A stretch of 64,000 nucleotides of DNA from Pseudomonas aeruginosa PAO1 (GCF_000006765.1 NC_002516.2), one strand, 5' to 3'; shown: positions 40,384 through 49,042, counted from the stretch's first letter. Notes: generated from the letters alone by a model not told the origin. A program made the numbers and translations.

Positions 40384-41175
40384 TCAAAACGCCCGATGCA
40401 CCGCATCGGGCGTTTTGTTTTTCAGGGCCATGTGAGGCCGCTCTGTGTTGTAGATCTGCACGGCTTCAGCAACCATCTTCCTTGCCTGCTCCAGATTTTC
40501 AGGGCTACTCAGCAGCAGCTCTGTTTTGAGGATCCCGTAGATGCGCTCAGCTAGCGCGTTCTGGTAGCAGTCATATCCGTCAGTCATCGAGCACTGGACG
40601 CCATGCCGTGCATGCAGTGACTGATACAGCGCCGAGAAATATTGAATACCGCGATCCGAGTGGTGGACCAGTGACTGGCGACGCTGCCGTTTGCGTAAGG
40701 CCTGCCTAAAGGCTTGTGCAACTGACTTGGCATGCAGGCTTTCATGCACATGGTGGCCAACAATTTTTCTGGAATACGCATCCGTTACCAGGCTTAGGTA
40801 CAGCGGGCCGCTACTGGCTGGCAGGTAAGTAATGTCCGCCGCCCAAACGTGCTCCGGTCCTGACGGGACAACCTGGTTCGGGCCTGACTTGAGTAGGTTC
40901 GGATGGCGGTAGAAGCGGTGAAAGCTTTGTGTTGTCTTGTGATACGCCCGCTTGGGCAACACCAGCAAACGGCGCTCTCCCAGGACCTGAAATAGTCGGT
41001 CTCGGCCAATTTGGAGCCGCCTATCAGGCTGGCAATGCAGCAGATAGTGCAGCTTTCGTGTGCCTAGTCGTGGCTGACGTATCCGGATTTGTTGAACAAA
41101 TTCGACAACCCGATCTGCCTGGCGTGCTTTGCTATCAGCAGCTCGATTGCGCTTGTAGTAAGCCTGTCGGCTCAT
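40384..41175 (-). CDS. IS3-family transposase OrfB (rve integrase core)
   Basis: WAADITY, DAYSRKIVG, HHSDRGIQY, NALAER..GILKTE. Confidence 0.88.
   Translation of the reverse strand: MSRQAYYKRNRAADSKARQADRVVEFVQQIRIRQPRLGTRKLHYLLHCQPDRRLQIGRDRLFQVLGERRLLVLPKRAYHKTTQSFHRFYRHPNLLKSGPNQVVPSGPEHVWAADITYLPASSGPLYLSLVTDAYSRKIVGHHVHESLHAKSVAQAFRQALRKRQRRQSLVHHSDRGIQYFSALYQSLHARHGVQCSMTDGYDCYQNALAERIYGILKTELLLSSPENLEQARKMVAEAVQIYNTERPHMALKNKTPDAVHRAF
40385..40422. terminator. 15-bp perfect hairpin with T-tract inside the 3' end of IS orfB
   Basis: CAAAACGCCCGATGC-ACC-GCATCGGGCGTTTTG followed by TTTTT. Confidence 0.65.
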
Positions 41176-41204: not shown

Positions 41205-41521
41205 TCAGTCCTGCGACTTGACCTTGCGAGAGGACTTGCCGGATCGCTTTTTTACGACCGATACACCGTAATCATTTTTCAGGACATCGACGACGGTCTC
41301 GAAGAACTGATCCTTCTGGCTCATCAACTCAAGCTGCTGCTCAAGCTCTTTGATCCGCTGCTCTGGAGTGAGCGTTTTGGGGTCAGACATCGCGCAACTC
41401 CTCTCGGCCCGAATCGACGCTCCAATCCTGCCGACCATGCTTGCGCAACCATACCAGAACCGTCGACCGGCCCTGGATGCCATACCGCACCTGGGCCTGC
41501 TTGTAGGTCACCTTTCCTTGT
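41205..41521 (-). pseudogene. IS3 orfA fragment (5'-truncated, frameshifted)
   Basis: VTYKQAQVRYGIQGRSTVLVWLRKHGRQDWS in one frame, GASIRAERSCAMSDPKTLTPEQRIKELE in another. Confidence 0.8.
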
Positions 41522-41561: not shown

Positions 41562-43154
41562 CTATAAATCGTCCTGCCAGTCGGTGCTGGGTTTGAGGCT
41601 GCTCAGGAACTCTTCCAGGGCATAGTCTTCGCCGGGCGGCAACCGGGTCGTGAGCCGACTGGCGGGCGCCACCGGGTCGGCCGATGGCGGCGGACCGTCG
41701 CCGCTGGCGGTCTGCGGCAGCAGGTCGACGCCGAACGGGTCGTGAACGGGCTTCTTCCCCGGCGTCGGCGAGCTGATGCCGATCAGGGTCGCCTGGTCCT
41801 TGCGCCGCAACGGCATCACCATGCTGCTGTCGCCGTTGAGGTAGCTGGCCATGGTCGCCAGGGTGATGCCAACGAAGGGCGAGGCCGCGCCGGTGTCGCC
41901 CAGGCGCTGGGTCAGGTCGTAGCTTTCCCGCGAGTCCAGCAAGTCCAGCGAACTCTGCGCGGCGCCCAGCGCCGGGGTGAGTTCGGCCAGCGGCGTGGCG
42001 TTCAAACCGCCGTCGTAGAACAGCCGGGCGGGCGCCGGCCTGAGCCCGGCACTGGCCGTCTTCCAGGCAGCGGCCAGTTGTGCGGTGAGAGCTTCGCGCT
42101 TGAGCCGTTCGCCGGTATCCGGGTGGGTCAGCGGCACACTCACCGGCCGATGCAGCCTGGCCAGCACCGGCAACGCATCCCACTGCTCCAGAGCCCGCTC
42201 GGTCCAGGGCTGGGGAATGAACGGCGTGGGGCGGAACTCCACCGGCGGCTTGCGCCAGCCCCAGCCACGGAACTCGGGGTCGATCCGGTTTTCGTTGACC
42301 TTGGTGTAGGGGGCGAACTGGCGTAGCCAGTCGACCCGCTCGGGGCGGCCGACGATCAGGGCGACCATTGCATCCGTAAGCGTTCCAGGTATCCGAGGGC
42401 CTGACACAGCGCCTAGTGACTTCAATGTTACATCTCTACTGGAAAGCGCCCCCGCCATACTGATGCCTTCATTCGCATACACCAACACTGCTGGCAAGTC
42501 AGGGTTGCGTTCGAATAAACTGAACAACGCCTCCAGTACTCCTTCAGGCGTATCGTTACAGATAATGCCATCCTGCAAATTGGCAATCCGATGCCAATGC
42601 AGTCCAGCCGGAACACGGAGATCATTGACTTTTACTGACAGGCTTTCCCGCGTCTCCTCCGGAGTGAAGCGTAGGTTAGGAGTGCTCGGATCCCAACCAC
42701 GCACCACCGTCACCGTCGGTATCGGCCATTTCTCCAGGAAGTTTTTCAGCCCTAGTTCCAAGGCGTCCGCTTGGCGCTTTTCATACGCCATATCCTTGTC
42801 ATCCGCAGACGTCGGATACTTCTTCGGGTCCATCGGCAGGATGCTGCCGACATGCAACGCCTCGGCCTGTGCGGCATTCTGCTCCTGCAAGGCCTTCCAC
42901 ACTTGCCCCTGGCGAAACACATCCAGGCTCATGCCTATGCTGAGCACGTCCAGGGTTTCCAGGCGCGGCGAAGTTGTCGGTGGGTGATAAGCATCAGCGG
43001 ACATGGTGGCCTCCTTGGCCGGGGCGTAGGCGGTAACGGACGTGGCCGGACTGGCAAAGCAGCGCATCGAGGATAGCGGCGACTCGGCCGCCTGCCCCAC
43101 AGGGCAGTTCAAAAGGACGCCAACGAGAGAGAAAGCTGAGAGCATCAAGCGCAT
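41562..43154 (-). CDS. tla3: DUF2875 T6SS lipase-effector partner (Tla3/PA0259); alternative start at 43004
   Basis: Follows tle3 with TAATG overlap; DLTQRLGDTGAASPFVGI DUF2875-type motif; internal AAGGAGG-ATG gives a 480-aa form. Confidence 0.8.
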   Translation of the reverse strand: MRLMLSAFSLVGVLLNCPVGQAAESPLSSMRCFASPATSVTAYAPAKEATMSADAYHPPTTSPRLETLDVLSIGMSLDVFRQGQVWKALQEQNAAQAEALHVGSILPMDPKKYPTSADDKDMAYEKRQADALELGLKNFLEKWPIPTVTVVRGWDPSTPNLRFTPEETRESLSVKVNDLRVPAGLHWHRIANLQDGIICNDTPEGVLEALFSLFERNPDLPAVLVYANEGISMAGALSSRDVTLKSLGAVSGPRIPGTLTDAMVALIVGRPERVDWLRQFAPYTKVNENRIDPEFRGWGWRKPPVEFRPTPFIPQPWTERALEQWDALPVLARLHRPVSVPLTHPDTGERLKREALTAQLAAAWKTASAGLRPAPARLFYDGGLNATPLAELTPALGAAQSSLDLLDSRESYDLTQRLGDTGAASPFVGITLATMASYLNGDSSMVMPLRRKDQATLIGISSPTPGKKPVHDPFGVDLLPQTASGDGPPPSADPVAPASRLTTRLPPGEDYALEEFLSSLKPSTDWQDDL

Positions 43155-45304
43155 TAGATTGTCCCCCCAAAGCGCACCGCCTGCTCGTGGTAACGATCTA
43201 GGATGGTTTGTGTCCCGACTAGGGAAGGCAGTCTATTTCCTACTACCACAGGGAACTCGCCACTCTTGCGGTAAGCTACGGTGGCGTCTATTAACTGGCT
43301 GTTTTTAGACTCTTCCGCACGGTACAAAGCACGCACCTCTTCATCCGGCAGATCAACAGACGCATCACCTTGACTAAATATTCCTTTGTCCGAAGCCTTC
43401 CAATCCAACCGCCAATCCGCCACCCGACACAGATACTGATAGAAAACCACATCATCCACGCTGTCCCCGGCCCCGATGGCCAGGTCATAGGCCAGTACCC
43501 GCCGGTTATGCTCCGGGTTGTTGGGTATGGCCGAGTGGAACGACAAGGGCTCCAGATGGCCCTCCGCCGTCTGCAGGCGCAGCCGGGCCTCGTAGGGAGT
43601 TTCCGCGCGGGTGACCAGAACCATGCCGGTGCCCAGTTCACGAGCGGAAAACACATGGGTCTGCTGGGCCAATTCCTTGCCTTCGTTCAACGCCCTCTCC
43701 ACGCTGCGCGCGTCGCGCCCGTAGCGGTACGCCAGCGCGGCGTCCACCTGTTGCGCGACGGCGTGCCCGCTGTCCTTTTCCTTCCAGCCGCCGTTGCTTA
43801 CGCCGATGGCGGCGTCGATCGGATCGAGGGTATCGCGCACCTGATAGACGCCGCTGGCGGAGTTCTCTCCCGGCGCCGTGACGGCTCCGTCGAAATCGAA
43901 TCGCGCTTCCGTCGGCAACGGCAGACGCGGCGCAGTCAGCAGCACGCTGTCGCCCTGGTCGAAGTTCGCCCGGCCGAATCTGTCCTTGCCGCCCAGCCCG
44001 GTGTCTTCCCAGGTCTTCTCGCCGGCCAGCAGAAGAGGATAGACATGGGGAGGGGCGTGCCCGCCGATCTTTTCCTTCTCGCCATTGCGCTTGCGTACGG
44101 TGAAGATGCGCTGGTGAAAACCCTGCGGCAGCCCGGTCCTTCCCGGGAGCCCCTTGACCTGCTCAGCAATGCCGCGCCAGCCGATACCCTGGACGTTGGC
44201 AAGTCCCACCGTCTGGTCCTGGGGCGTGAAATACAGGTAGACACTGCCGCGATTGTCGCGCTCATCGAAGCTGAGCCGTTCCCCGTCGATGGTCGTCTGG
44301 CAGCCCTGGCCACCCACCCAGCCGGGGCCGCCTATCGCGCCGTAGCCTTGGCAGTTGCGCAACGCGACGCTGCTCAGCGCGGGGACCGGATGGCGTCGGC
44401 CGCAGATGAACTCGAGGATACCTTTGAGCGTGGCCAGCCGCGCCTCTCTGGTCTGCTGGCTGCTCCAGCCCTGGAGCTTCTCGTTGAGGGGTTCGAACAG
44501 GCCGTAGGGTGAGTTGAGCATGATCACCCCGTCCGCCGGCGCCACGCCGTCATCCTTGAGGAAGGCATGTGCCAGCAGGGTCAACAGGGTGCCCTGGCTG
44601 TGCCCGACGACATTGATGGTGTCGTCCGGGTAACGCTTGCGGATGATCTTGATCAACATGGCCAGGCGCATGGCCGCAAGGACCATGTACTTGCGCCCTG
44701 CCGCCGAAAACAGCGGATGGGTCATGGTGCCGCCGAACCAGTCCAGCGAGATGAAACCGAACAGCTTGCCGTTGAAACCCTGGCCCCACATGTCCGGCAG
44801 GTTGGTGGTGGCATTGACGAACTGCCCGCCTTCCTTGGTGCCGGACTTGTCCAGCCGGTTGCCGTTGCGGTCCAGCCATTCGCCGTGGGCCGCGGTCTTG
44901 TTGATGTATTGCTCTTCCTCGCGGAAGCCCCAGTAGAAAGGTACGACTACGCTGCGTACGGCGGCCCCGCCGGCGCCACTGGCGAACTTGCGCCGGTAGT
45001 AGACGACGTCGGGGTTCTCTGCCTTGCCTTCGTCGTCCGCCGGCAGGCTGTAGCCCGCCGGCGTCAGGTAGCCGGGATTGGCCTGCCCGCCGGGCAAGGT
45101 CGGCGGCATGTCCAGGCGTTCATTGAGCCCCTGGCAGAGCCCTCGCTCGATCCGTTCGTAGCAACCCGCGAGATCGTTGACGCCATGCACCACGATGGTC
45201 ACGCAAGGCTTGGGCGGAGGCGGCACCAGGTGCACGTCGCCGCCCTTGGGCAAGGTGATGGACTGGGCAGAGACGATCGTCCTCGACCGAACCCTATCGT
45301 TCAT
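43154..45304 (-). CDS. tle3: T6SS phospholipase effector Tle3 (alpha/beta hydrolase + DUF3274)
   Basis: VHGVND, GHSQG nucleophile motif (44591-44605), D..VGL, LSFHSAIP. Confidence 0.88.
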   Translation of the reverse strand: MNDRVRSRTIVSAQSITLPKGGDVHLVPPPPKPCVTIVVHGVNDLAGCYERIERGLCQGLNERLDMPPTLPGGQANPGYLTPAGYSLPADDEGKAENPDVVYYRRKFASGAGGAAVRSVVVPFYWGFREEEQYINKTAAHGEWLDRNGNRLDKSGTKEGGQFVNATTNLPDMWGQGFNGKLFGFISLDWFGGTMTHPLFSAAGRKYMVLAAMRLAMLIKIIRKRYPDDTINVVGHSQGTLLTLLAHAFLKDDGVAPADGVIMLNSPYGLFEPLNEKLQGWSSQQTREARLATLKGILEFICGRRHPVPALSSVALRNCQGYGAIGGPGWVGGQGCQTTIDGERLSFDERDNRGSVYLYFTPQDQTVGLANVQGIGWRGIAEQVKGLPGRTGLPQGFHQRIFTVRKRNGEKEKIGGHAPPHVYPLLLAGEKTWEDTGLGGKDRFGRANFDQGDSVLLTAPRLPLPTEARFDFDGAVTAPGENSASGVYQVRDTLDPIDAAIGVSNGGWKEKDSGHAVAQQVDAALAYRYGRDARSVERALNEGKELAQQTHVFSARELGTGMVLVTRAETPYEARLRLQTAEGHLEPLSFHSAIPNNPEHNRRVLAYDLAIGAGDSVDDVVFYQYLCRVADWRLDWKASDKGIFSQGDASVDLPDEEVRALYRAEESKNSQLIDATVAYRKSGEFPVVVGNRLPSLVGTQTILDRYHEQAVRFGGTI

Positions 45305-45798
45305 GGCTTCTCTCCTTGCCGCTCCTCGGCGTTGCGTCGTGCCAGGCAGGTCGCTTCGTCGAGCAGCATCCAGTTGCCAGGTTCGCCGGCCAGGCAGAAT
45401 TCGACGGCAATGCTGGAAACCGTTTGCCGGTGCCGACGGCTACGCTCGTTGAAATGAATGAATGCGTTGTAGCTCCCATCTGGCTGCAAGCGCTCCGGCC
45501 GGCGCAGGAGCACGCTGGAGCCGGGATAGTCGCCGAAGACCTCGATCTCCCCGGCACGCCACCCGGGCGGGAGCTCGATCCGCCACAGCGTTTCCTGGCA
45601 ATGGCTGCCGACCCGCCGACATACCGAAACACGGGTGATCTCGACGTCGTTGGTTTCCGCCAGCAAGGGGCGTAGATCCAGTGTCACGCGCCCGGAGCCG
45701 GCGTGCACCGGGATCTGCGGTGGCAGTTTGGAAACGGCCAGGGCCTGGGCGCTTCCCAGGCCGAACAGGCAGGCAATGAGCAAGGTCTTGCATTTCAT
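45301..45798 (-). CDS. tli3: Periplasmic immunity protein (PA0261; reported as Tli3/VgrG2b immunity)
   Basis: Signal peptide MKCKTLLIACLFGLGSAQALA; between vgrG2b and tle3, ATGA overlap with tle3. Confidence 0.75.
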   Translation of the reverse strand: MKCKTLLIACLFGLGSAQALAVSKLPPQIPVHAGSGRVTLDLRPLLAETNDVEITRVSVCRRVGSHCQETLWRIELPPGWRAGEIEVFGDYPGSSVLLRRPERLQPDGSYNAFIHFNERSRRHRQTVSSIAVEFCLAGEPGNWMLLDEATCLARRNAEERQGEKP

Positions 45799-45801
45799 TG
45801 G

Positions 45802-48800
45802 TCAGTATCCCGTTGGGAAGTTTTTCAGTACGCCAGCGAACCTGCTGTTCGCAGAGGCTTCCCCGAACTCGTTCTTCTCGAGGAAATAATCTCGAACGAT
45901 GTCTCCCTGCTGTTCGATGTTGTAGTCCTTCAACGTCTTTCCCGGCTCCAACCGGTAGGCGTACTGGTCGCCTAGGAGAAACTGCCTGGCTTGCTGGTAG
46001 GCCCCCACCAGAAGGACGTTGACGCCATGCTGGTGCTGCCAGACATGGGTCATTTCGTGAATGAACAGACCCTGGCGCTGCAGGCTCTCCAGGCTCCAGT
46101 CCGCCACGCCGCGCAACTCCTCGCCGAAGTAGATGTGGCCGTTCGGCGCCATCACGTAGTCCTTGCCCTGCCAGGGGACATAGTCCTCGTCGCGCAGGCG
46201 GACCGTGGAATAGTCGATGGAATCGCCGAATACGCCTTTCGCCAGGCTGATTTCCCCTTCGCTGAGAGCACGTCCGGCCTCGGCGTCGGGGCCACCCAGG
46301 AGCTTGCCGACTGCAACCGCCGCGCCAACCGCCGCTGCTATCCCGGCAACTGCGGAGGCGGGCGATTTCGTGTGTTTCATATCGACCTTGGCGATGTTCA
46401 TCGCATCCTTCTGCAGCAGCTGGGTAGCGCCTTCGGCGTCGGTGACGCCCTCGATGACCTCGCCGTTGGCCATGGTGATGGTATAGGGCACGTTGGGCAT
46501 GGCCGTTTGCCCGTCCAGTTGCTTGAGGACGAACCGCCGCTGCGTCTCGCCCACCTCGAACTGCGGCAGCTCGGCTTCCAGGCTGGCCGCGCCGACATGA
46601 CTGTGCTTCGCCGCCTTGACCACGAAGTTGCCGGGCATGCCCAGCTCGATGTTGCCGCCCTTGAGGGTCAGGTAGGCGCCGCCGCACATCAGGGTGATGT
46701 GCTCCTTCGCGGTGACCAGCACGTGCTGCTGGCTGGCGCTGACCTCCACGCTCTGCTTGGCCTCCAGGCGGATGTCGTTCTTCTGCGCCTGCAGCAGCAT
46801 CGGCCCCTGGTGGGTGATCTGGCGCAGCTCGCCGCCCTGGGCGAACAGGCCGATGTCGCTGCCGGCGTTGATCACCACCTTCTGCCCGGCGGTCACCTGC
46901 TGGTTCTGCCGGGCCACGCTGTCGACGTGCTCGCCGGCGGCCAGGGTCAGGCTCGCCGGCGTCGCCGCGGCGATCCCTGCCGGACCGCTCAAGGCGATCG
47001 CCGGCTTGCCCCCGTTGCTCTTGCCGGACTCGTCGTTGGCGCCGTGGCCGAGGTCGCGCACGGCTTCCTGGAGGGTTTGCTGCGGCGCCGCGTCGTGCCC
47101 CACGCCCTGGTGCTCCCCGGCGTAGTCGCCCAGCTCGCGGGCCAGCTCCAGCGCGGCCTCCAGCACCTGCACCACGACGCCTCGGTCGAGATGGCCGGCG
47201 CCGGCCCTGAGCTGCTCCTCGGTGCTCAGCAGCAGCCCCTTGGCCGCACGCACCGCGCCATGTTCGTCGGTGCGCAGTTCGAAGCCCTCGCCGCGCGGCT
47301 TGCCGCCTTCGGGCCGAGGATGGGTCAGGTAGCCCAGGTGCAGCGCGCTGGCACCGTGGTCGCTCATCAGCGCCGCACTGATCTGCGCCGTGGTGTCGTC
47401 GATGCGCAGCTCGTTGGCCCGACTGCCCTTGTACTCCTTGCTCTTGATGGTGCTGAGGATCTTGTGGTCGGGCAGCGCGTAGGGCGGTCGGTTGGTCGCC
47501 CGGTAGGTGCGCCCGGTGACGATCGGCTGGTCGCAGTCGCCGTCCAGGTAATCGACGATCACCTCCTGGCCAATCCGCGGGATCGCCATGTGCCCCCAGT
47601 CGGCACCTGCCCAGTTCTGCGCGACCCGTATCCAGCAGGTACTGAACTCATCGTGACGTCCCTCGCGATCCCAGGGGAACTGGACCTTCACCCGTCCCCA
47701 CTCGTCGCAATGGATCTCTTCCCCTGCCGGGCCGACTACCGTCGCGATCTGCGGACCATCGATACGCGGCCGAGGCAGCGGTGCGGGACGCCATTCGACG
47801 TCCTCGGGTACCAGTTCGGCGCGCAGGTCGTAGCTCACCCCCAGAGGGGCGTCGGCGGACTCTTCCTCCTGGCCGGCATACTGGGTGCCGCGATGGACCA
47901 CCCGCACCGGCCGCCACCAGGCGTTGAAGTCGGCACGCGGATGACCTTCCAGGGCAAAGGCGTGGCCCGGGATCAGCCGCGGGTCGTCGCCGCTGACCGA
48001 TGCCACCCGCGCATCGCGCCGGTGCCCTCTGAGGCGGCTTTCGGTGAAAGGCCGGCCGGCGCCGCTCCGCTTGTAGCGACCGGGGTAGTCGTAGCGCTCG
48101 TAGGACGAGCCCTGATGCTCGAGCGCCTCGCCAGCGAGATGATGCTCCTGGTCGTAGGTCGGGCGCTTGAAGCTGTAGTCCCGCTGGGTCTGTCGAGCCG
48201 TACGAACATTTTCGCTGTAGCGGAAAGAATGAAGCACCGGCTGCGGGTTGTCGCCCTCCGGCTGGGCGCTGAACAGTACCGGGCCGCCGGCGATACGCTC
48301 CTGGACGTAGAGCCGGTCGCTGCAGACCAGGGTGTGGCGGTGTTCGTCGAAGCGGAAGTAGTAGACCAGGCCTTCCTCGAAAGCCAGCCGGTCGTGCAGG
48401 TAGTGATCGCTGTCGCCGGCCTGCACGCAGTATTCGCGCGGCAGGTGCTCATGGTAGATGCGCTGTTCGTAGTCGAGCACCCGGTGTTCCTTGAGCAGCG
48501 CCTGGAGAATCTCCGGAACACTCTTCTCCTGGAAGATCCGCCAGTTGCAGCACAGCTCCAGGCGCGCCAACTGCGGTTCCAGCAGCAGTTCGTAGCGGGT
48601 CCGGCGAAAACCCGAGCTGCCCTGGGTGAAGTGGCTGACGATGCCATGGACGTAGCGGGCCGGACGGCCGTCCTGCCAGAGGGTGAAGGTGCCCGGCTGG
48701 TCGAGTACCTGCTTGAAATCGATGGCGTTCTTGTCGCTGGCCAGCTTCAGGTTCAGGCGGAAAGGCTCGCAGAGCGCTTCTTCCAGTTCGAACTCGACGA

Positions 48801-48861
48801 CATCGAACGCGAGTTTCCCTTCGCCGACGACGAAGGTGAATTTCAGGTCCCTTTGACGCAT
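45802..48861 (-). CDS. vgrG2b: Evolved VgrG spike with C-terminal zinc metallopeptidase
   Basis: MRQRDLKF start; VgrG core (DEWGRVKVQFPWDR, AIPRIGQEV), DUF2345-like and TTR-like segments, HEMTH at 46045-46059; 1019 aa. Confidence 0.93.
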   Translation of the reverse strand: MRQRDLKFTFVVGEGKLAFDVVEFELEEALCEPFRLNLKLASDKNAIDFKQVLDQPGTFTLWQDGRPARYVHGIVSHFTQGSSGFRRTRYELLLEPQLARLELCCNWRIFQEKSVPEILQALLKEHRVLDYEQRIYHEHLPREYCVQAGDSDHYLHDRLAFEEGLVYYFRFDEHRHTLVCSDRLYVQERIAGGPVLFSAQPEGDNPQPVLHSFRYSENVRTARQTQRDYSFKRPTYDQEHHLAGEALEHQGSSYERYDYPGRYKRSGAGRPFTESRLRGHRRDARVASVSGDDPRLIPGHAFALEGHPRADFNAWWRPVRVVHRGTQYAGQEEESADAPLGVSYDLRAELVPEDVEWRPAPLPRPRIDGPQIATVVGPAGEEIHCDEWGRVKVQFPWDREGRHDEFSTCWIRVAQNWAGADWGHMAIPRIGQEVIVDYLDGDCDQPIVTGRTYRATNRPPYALPDHKILSTIKSKEYKGSRANELRIDDTTAQISAALMSDHGASALHLGYLTHPRPEGGKPRGEGFELRTDEHGAVRAAKGLLLSTEEQLRAGAGHLDRGVVVQVLEAALELARELGDYAGEHQGVGHDAAPQQTLQEAVRDLGHGANDESGKSNGGKPAIALSGPAGIAAATPASLTLAAGEHVDSVARQNQQVTAGQKVVINAGSDIGLFAQGGELRQITHQGPMLLQAQKNDIRLEAKQSVEVSASQQHVLVTAKEHITLMCGGAYLTLKGGNIELGMPGNFVVKAAKHSHVGAASLEAELPQFEVGETQRRFVLKQLDGQTAMPNVPYTITMANGEVIEGVTDAEGATQLLQKDAMNIAKVDMKHTKSPASAVAGIAAAVGAAVAVGKLLGGPDAEAGRALSEGEISLAKGVFGDSIDYSTVRLRDEDYVPWQGKDYVMAPNGHIYFGEELRGVADWSLESLQRQGLFIHEMTHVWQHQHGVNVLLVGAYQQARQFLLGDQYAYRLEPGKTLKDYNIEQQGDIVRDYFLEKNEFGEASANSRFAGVLKNFPTGY

Positions 48862-49042
48862 GGATCGTTCCTTGTTCCTGGCGGGCGGTTCCTCCCCCAT
48901 CCGTTGGAGAAGCGAGCCCCACGTTACTCTTGCTCAGCCGCTGCCGAAAGTCTTGGCTCGGTGTCTATTTCGCGAAGTAGCGGACATTTTCGGCTCGACG
49001 GAGAACCGGCCGCACAGGTGTACGACCGGTGTGCCTGTCAAC

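Follow-up and report, generated by a model that had tools for sequence, protein, structure and literature searches.

The stretch of DNA considered here (the window) is 64,000 nucleotides (nt) of one strand of the Pseudomonas aeruginosa PAO1 chromosome (GCF_000006765.1 NC_002516.2), read 5' to 3'. On its minus strand lies a tightly packed operon in the order vgrG2b-tli3-tle3-tla3, with vgrG2b first, which includes a type VI secretion system (T6SS) phospholipase effector gene, tle3. Our subject is the last gene, tla3 (PA0259), an open reading frame (ORF) at 41562..43154 that encodes 530 amino acids (aa). It sits directly downstream of tle3 in a vgrG island, the placement that marks the Tla3 family, and both Pfam Tla3 domains exceed their gathering thresholds in its product, with no other Pfam domain found there. 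We put the chance at somewhat better than even, roughly 0.55, that tla3 is a real dual-start gene, from which an exported form is made at an upstream start, ATG1, and the known cytoplasmic adaptor at an internal start, ATG4. We infer the exported form from tests of selection together with published export in E. coli, while the adaptor is known from published experiment.

Four in-frame ATGs are found at the beginning of tla3: ATG1, ATG4 (Met51) and two more between them, Met4 at 43145 and Met30 at 43067. Pairing with the anti-Shine-Dalgarno sequence gives duplex energies of -9.3, +0.7, -2.2 and -11.4 kcal/mol for ATG1 to ATG4 in that order, against an in-gene background of about -2.5, and a scan of duplex energies places the strongest such site of the entire gene at the Shine-Dalgarno sequence (SD) of ATG4. 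A first-pass annotation, made from the window alone, had held that ATG1 and the tle3 stop have one base in common (TAATG), that ATG1 opens a Sec-like signal, and that ATG4 stands behind AAGGAGG and a 5-nt spacer and begins a 480-aa form; all three observations are borne out. The N-terminus read from ATG1 starts with M-R, continues into a 13-residue hydrophobic core (LMLSAFSLVGVLL) and ends with G-Q-A at positions -3 to -1 of a predicted cleavage site between G-Q-A and A. This is the tripartite pattern of a Sec (type I) signal, with a charged n-region, an h-region 7 or more residues long and small amino acids at -3 and -1; the pattern recurs in the orthologue alignments, and SignalP 4.1 is positive for both the ATG1 and the ATG2 forms (PMC6560169). 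The lipobox pattern [LVI][ASTVI][GAS]C is absent from the window's tla3, where the residues are L-L-N-C and the Asn at -1 is unfit, and Cys17 is found in just 4 of 84 homologues. In P. aeruginosa allele D (L048-L050, L053; P0001) the hydrophobic core ends in L-L-S-C, a possible lipobox, and going by this motif the exported form might be a lipoprotein in some strains.

Table 1. Features of tla3 and of the genes upstream of it in the operon, in window coordinates.
Feature	Coordinates	Strand	Remarks
ATG1 (upstream start)	43152..43154	-	one base in common with the tle3 stop (cTAATG)
SD-like GGGGGGA for ATG1	43162..43168	-	built from two Gly codons (GGG GGG) close to the C-terminal end of tle3
Putative Sec-type signal peptide MRLMLSAFSLVGVLLNCPVGQA, codons 1-22	43089..43154	-	sequence pattern; omega 0.50
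Codons 23-50 AESPLSSMRCFASPATSVTAYAPAKEAT, N-terminal segment of the putative exported form	43005..43088	-	includes Cys32 (43061-43059); omega 0.31
GGCC-AAGGA-GGCC around the internal SD	43008..43020	-	AAGGAGG at 43016-43010; may form a 4-bp hairpin whose loop holds GGA
ATG4 (Met51), internal start, annotated PA0259 start	43002..43004	-	AAGGAGG and 5-nt spacer CCACC; used experimentally in PAO1 (PMC6560169)
ORF of the 480-aa cytoplasmic Tla3 adaptor, stop included	41562..43004	-	Pfam; 96% identity to PDB 8YZ3
Tla3_N	42429-42959	-	residues 66-242; 215 bits against a cut-off of 24.7 (Pfam PF11394 and PF20995 form the Tla3 pair)
Cys199 codon	42560-42558	-	in the tla3 body
Tla3_C	41769-42164	-	residues 331-462; 198 bits against a cut-off of 24.8 (Pfam)
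tle3 (PA0260-type T6SS phospholipase effector, 716 aa)	43154..45304	-	Pfam Tle3 3e-103, Tle3_C 1.6e-62; stop TAA at 43156-43154
PA0261-type gene	45301..45798	-	signal peptide; stop overlaps the tle3 start (ATGA)
vgrG2b-type evolved VgrG	45802..48900	-	Pfam Phage_GPD, Phage_base_V, T6SS_Vgr, DUF2345

The case for ATG1 is comparative. As a guard against annotation bias we used DNA from one genome per species, which gave 42 loci with 45 complete Tla3-like copies from Pseudomonas, Achromobacter, Dyella and Paraburkholderia. Starts were picked by a heuristic that failed or was doubtful for the non-adjacent loci L004, L012, L022-24, L026, L031, L033 and L037, and these were excluded from the codon-model set, which consists of 19 Pseudomonas orthologues directly following tle3. 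Conservation of the extension upstream of Met51 was one of the checks that the first-pass annotation had proposed for its idea, and on this point the idea fares well: the in-frame extension (47-69 codons) is open in 45 of 45 copies across the four genera, with 0 stops in frame among 2478 codons versus 120 and 57 in the other two frames. It occurs in 17 different lengths, every one of them in frame, and in all 45 copies it encodes an N-terminus that runs from charged to hydrophobic to small residues. Database homologues in many Pseudomonas species are likewise annotated at about 526-535 aa and align across the entire extension. A 90%-identity cluster that holds the window's Tla3 in both its 480- and 530-aa forms also holds Tle3 proteins of 716-718 aa, with a representative of 718 aa, which is probably a clustering artefact.

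Selection on the extension is evident from its substitutions. Across the 19 orthologues the ratio of nonsynonymous to synonymous substitution rates (omega, or dN/dS) is 0.50 for the signal peptide (omega = 1 rejected, p = 6e-5), 0.31 for codons 23-50 (p = 2e-12) and 0.35 for the whole extension (p = 1e-20), next to 0.11 for the core and 0.24 for the C-terminal tail, all on codon-model partitions that are short and with dS partly saturated. Third positions diverge equally in the extension (0.46) and in the core (0.47), which argues that the constraint acts on the protein and not on RNA or DNA. We also considered RNA structure as the cause of the 150-nt conservation and rejected it, as the region folds worse than shuffled controls (z = +1.77) and its third positions are as free as those of the core. 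The same signal is present within the species. We compared four distinct alleles of the P. aeruginosa group, two of them taken from species genomes and the others from metagenomes: dN/dS of the extension is 0.20-0.33 at dS of 0.14-0.81 (binomial p 2e-4 to 0.016), and the extension is intact in all four and in the P. aeruginosa-named variants P0003, P0007 and P0091. A decaying relic would not show this within-species pattern. A metagenome allele, L058 1501..2112 (OJKS01001135.1), is 98% identical to the window's tla3, but its reading frame meets a stop after 204 codons, which may mean a pseudogene or a faulty assembly.

The way in which ATG1 meets tle3 is conserved as well. Where a copy comes directly after tle3, the extension's start and the tle3 stop overlap in most cases; the overlap is T[AG]ATG in 18 Pseudomonas copies following tle3 (TAGTG in L020), and ATGA in most of the Achromobacter and Dyella copies placed directly after tle3. 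The Gly-Gly pair near the Tle3 C-terminus, whose codons form the candidate SD, is encoded by GGR codons in 30 of 41 cases compared with 28% in tle3 bodies (p = 3e-9), and this synonymous bias supports the SD of ATG1. Overlaps such as TAATG and ATGA are known from operons with translational coupling, and this operon has both, one base being shared between the tle3 stop and ATG1, and ATGA joining the PA0261 stop to the tle3 start. Unlike ordinary coupled starts, ATG1 has a second, stronger SD-driven in-frame start 150 nt downstream. In P. paraeruginosa (L001) there are three tandem tla3 copies, and several other species have two; copies 2 and 3 of L001 (5592.., 7223..) have an apparent GTG start that overlaps the stop of the preceding tla3 (TAGTG) and retain, besides a signal-like N-terminus, both the post-signal Cys and an internal start of the form AAGGAGG-ATG. 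No second tla3 copy was found in the 64-kb window.

Among the window's four ATGs, Met1 and Met51 are conserved, while Met4 and Met30 are not. The codon equivalent to Met51 is ATG in 43 of 45 copies and GTG in the other 2, amid a poorly conserved flanking linker. Over the 45 copies the SD of this internal start has a median energy of -6.5 kcal/mol, compared with a background of -2.1 and a mean of -2.4 for other in-frame ATGs, and in 26 copies it is within the top 5% of positions of its own gene. Synonymous codon choice in the six codons before the internal start leans to codons that build an SD: Lys is AAG in 33 of 35 cases versus 59% elsewhere (p = 3e-6), Glu is GAG in 14 of 17 versus 49% (p = 0.005), and Arg is AGR in 7 of 7 versus 11% (p = 2e-7). 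Taken with the results for ATG1, the comparison indicates that the whole Tla3-like branch of DUF2875 has the two-start layout and that selection keeps it, within P. aeruginosa as well. Farther out in DUF2875, cytoplasmic-type proteins have their first residue at the Met51-equivalent, and others have signal peptides, lipoboxes or two transmembrane helices; a large distant branch (P0151, P0152, P0157 and many more) has two predicted N-terminal transmembrane helices and no signal peptide. In the window, the GGCC-AAGGA-GGCC hairpin at the internal SD is present in the minimum free energy fold, and from its GGA loop we infer a resemblance to an RsmA/CsrA binding site. Tla3-V5 levels are higher in an rsmA mutant (Berni et al. 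2019, PMC6560169).

Another conserved feature is a pair of cysteines, one on each side of Met51. Exactly one post-signal Cys is present in 44 of 45 copies, and Cys199 is the sole body Cys in 45 of 45; in 84 homologues Cys32 and Cys199 occur together in 82 and are both missing from 2 (P0104, P0118). Judged from these alignments, the pattern fits a disulfide that only the exported long form could make. In the AlphaFold model Cys199 is located at the strand-helix elbow of a thiolase-like fold. It might be thought that Cys199 is kept solely as a relic of a thiolase nucleophile; we rejected this, since in distant members of DUF2875 position 199 is occupied by Y, F or H. A structural search (Foldseek, top 50) gave, after 8YZ3, thiolase-fold enzymes (OleA, FabH, type III polyketide synthases and ketosynthase domains; E~1e-8), and on the modelled structure Tla3 seems to have a fold like that of thiolases but to lack their usual catalytic context.

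The surroundings of the operon contain some further ORFs. Directly downstream of tla3 are a small ORF at 41205..41483 (-) and an integrase of insertion sequence type (rve, rve_2, rve_3) at 40384..41175 (-). Within tle3, an antisense ORF at 43556..44512 (+), inside a longer ORF at 43370..44512, coincides exactly with the published overlapping gene olg1, which is PAO1 291,556-292,512 (PMC8850804); the offset to the window is 248,000, which makes the window PAO1 248,001-312,000.

As the first-pass annotation noted, PA0259 has two published labels. It was named immunity candidate Tli3, by prediction only, in Wood 2019 (PMC6899460), and Russell 2013, as cited in PMC6560169, also gives it that label; Berni et al. 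2019 (PMC6560169) describe it as the cytoplasmic adaptor Tla3, which binds Tle3 and the TTR domain of VgrG2b and is needed for Tle3 delivery in PAO1. The region of Tle3 that Tla3 binds is the C-terminal DUF3274 domain, not the lipase domain. The name Tli3 is given by Berni et al. to PA0261, which they find to be the protective protein against both Tle3 and the VgrG2b C-terminal domain, and in Wood 2019 PA0261 is the immunity protein for the VgrG2b C-terminal domain, which it neutralises. Berni et al. have already analysed these four in-frame ATGs in PAO1, and their conclusion is that there is a single start, ATG4, and one cytoplasmic product, the upstream ATGs being a false lead. Our comparison concerns the same gene and adds what is not treated in their account, namely how far the family conserves both SDs, the stop-start overlap, the signal peptide and the Cys that follows it. 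The construct used for the crystal structure of Tla3, PDB 8YZ3, begins at Met51. One P. aeruginosa protein, P0102 (514 aa, annotated as 'partial'), has VgrG domains joined to a Tla3_C domain, which may reflect the recombination between vgrG2b and the tle3-tli3 module described by Wood et al. 2019 in strain BL21.

The ATG1 construct is periplasmic in E. coli (PMC6560169), but the other experiments in that study weigh against an exported form in PAO1. E. coli with the exported ATG1 form remained unprotected against periplasmic Tle3; chromosomal Tla3-V5 in PAO1 was cytoplasmic and 'totally absent' from the periplasm; when each ATG was mutated to ATA, the change at ATG4 left no Tla3 product despite an intact ATG1; and prey with a tla3 deletion were not sensitised. 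Mutation of each ATG with fractionation and a protection assay, which the first-pass annotation had put forward as future work, was thus published in 2019 and came out negative for the long form, and because these tests were negative the idea of two isoforms survives via comparative evidence only. That evidence has weak points of its own. The sequences are phylogenetically related, so that the binomial p-values given above are optimistic, and the selection that we measure is a long-term average that could predate a recent loss of use. Joint loss of the two cysteines is a single evolutionary event, and L033 and P0169 are exceptions to the pattern. Lastly, in an AlphaFold2 model of the 530-aa form (84-sequence alignment) residues 15-54 have a predicted local distance difference test score (pLDDT) below 55. 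For the proposal of one gene with two isoforms, what stands is that both starts have strong SDs, are conserved and, by the comparative tests, are under selection. On a periplasmic location in the producer the evidence is divided: the conserved signal peptide speaks for it and the fractionation of PAO1 against it, experiments there having detected the cytoplasmic ATG4 product only. Under laboratory conditions the level of the exported form in PAO1 is below detection.

The main rival reading, which we hold to be less likely, is that P. aeruginosa uses ATG4 only and that the 150 nt are an untranslated leader. Its likeness to a signal peptide would then go back to an ancestor, as a mere leftover or because alleles are exchanged with lineages still using the signal. 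Such a single product agrees with the direct PAO1 experiments (cytoplasmic-only location, full dependence on ATG4 and no immunity phenotype; PMC6560169), with a structure solved from the Met51 form and with the start of distant cytoplasmic DUF2875 proteins at the Met51-equivalent. But one would then have to account for the low dN/dS of the extension among P. aeruginosa alleles whose dS reaches 0.8, for the lack of any disrupted extension in the four alleles or the three named variants together with indels that preserve the frame, and for an ATG1 SD that is maintained by synonymous GGR codons beside a conserved stop-start overlap. A leader that is not translated would not retain a Cys together with a hydrophobic core and a cleavage site of AxA type. 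Chance can be given hardly any weight: the window has a G+C content of 67% and long spurious ORFs are frequent on both its strands, such that open extensions with hydrophobic stretches could arise randomly or through annotation, but the idea is refuted by the same architecture in all 45 copies from four genera, by omega well below 1 and by the many stops in the other frames.

The first-pass annotation went further, and proposed to reconcile the two published roles by giving one to each form: immunity to Tle3, whether alone or beside another protein, to the exported 530-aa form, and the adaptor role to the 480-aa form. We consider this unlikely. The comparative evidence for an exported form is in keeping with it, as are the binding of Tle3 by Tla3 (PMC6560169), the original label Tli3, the precedent of E. 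cloacae Tli (discussed below) and the presence of 2-3 diverged tandem copies after one tle3 (L001, L002, L007, L008, L009, L025, L032), a pattern typical of immunity genes. However, the published protection and prey assays contradict a role of the periplasmic form in immunity to Tle3 (PMC6560169). It was PA0261, and not the ATG1 form, that protected E. coli from periplasmic Tle3, which leaves the reconciliation unsupported as stated; prey lacking tla3 were not killed, although PA0261 was still present in that prey and redundancy is possible; and the domain of Tle3 to which Tla3 binds is DUF3274 rather than the lipase domain.

The closest precedent for a dual-start tla3 is Tli of Enterobacter cloacae (Jensen et al. 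2023, bioRxiv 10.1101/2023.03.28.534661; J Bacteriol 205:e00113-23). It too is the partner of a T6SS phospholipase, and it acts on both sides of the inner membrane: periplasmic Tli confers immunity, while cytosolic Tli, which was attributed to alternative initiation codons, is needed for effector activation or export. The layout of tla3 is of the same type, in that a signal sequence comes first and then, in the same frame, a start that has a ribosome-binding site to itself. The two proteins are nevertheless unrelated, Tli being an ankyrin-repeat lipoprotein and Tla3 having the thiolase-like DUF2875 fold, and we regard Tli as an analogue only. The alternative starts of Tli (Met10, 16 and 24) are within or just after the signal, whereas the internal start of Tla3 is 28 residues past the predicted cleavage site. 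They differ also in which form is well documented, the periplasmic one for Tli and, for Tla3 in PAO1, the cytosolic one, the only one detected. A phrase search of the literature for internal initiation in T6SS immunity proteins gave nothing useful, and the E. cloacae case was found by its title. Another protein to compare is TplEi/Tli4 (PA1509), a periplasmic Tle4 immunity protein encoded beside a Tle effector and a homologue of PA0259 according to Berni et al. (PMC6560169). We could not confirm this homology, as sequence and profile searches of PDB sequences gave 8YZ3 as the sole credible match and Tli4 was not in the Foldseek top 50.

How might a dual-start tla3 work? In the published part, initiation at ATG4 behind AAGGAGG yields the cytoplasmic protein of 480 aa, which passes Tle3 on to the spike, VgrG2b. 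We propose that, in addition, ribosomes terminating on tle3 could re-initiate at the overlapping ATG1, because it has its own SD and overlaps the tle3 stop, and would produce a 530-aa precursor from which the 22-residue Sec signal is cleaved. The resulting periplasmic form would carry 28 extra N-terminal residues, including the conserved Cys, which may pair with Cys199. Such a form might bind Tle3, or it might serve as an auxiliary or orphan immunity protein. It may be expressed under certain conditions only, and the balance between the two forms may be set at the internal SD. In a bolder version all Tla3-like DUF2875 proteins would be obligatorily dual-localised, with a periplasmic form, made through re-initiation coupled to the tle3 stop and bonded through a Cys32-Cys199 disulfide, that captures incoming Tle3 or otherwise guards the envelope, and with an internal SD, possibly RsmA-gated at its hairpin, that gives the cytoplasmic loader, such that one gene would balance arming and self-protection. 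This we think improbable.

The ATGs of this gene were already in the literature, as was a Tle partner with roles in two compartments through alternative initiation, E. cloacae Tli. What is new is the evidence of selection for both starts in the Tla3-like DUF2875 branch, which is at odds with the conclusion in print that only one start is used. The T6SS adaptor family defined by Tla3 is purely cytoplasmic in the literature, and made from one start. Should the exported form be real, tla3 would be the second, unrelated case after E. cloacae Tli of one tle-adjacent gene that serves both sides of the inner membrane by alternative initiation, and the competing names of PA0259, Tli3 and Tla3, would have a molecular explanation. 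The annotation of hundreds of homologues, now split between about 480 and about 530 aa, would then need to include both products. If instead P. aeruginosa does not make the exported form, one would have to explain why a signal peptide that is not used is under strong purifying selection.

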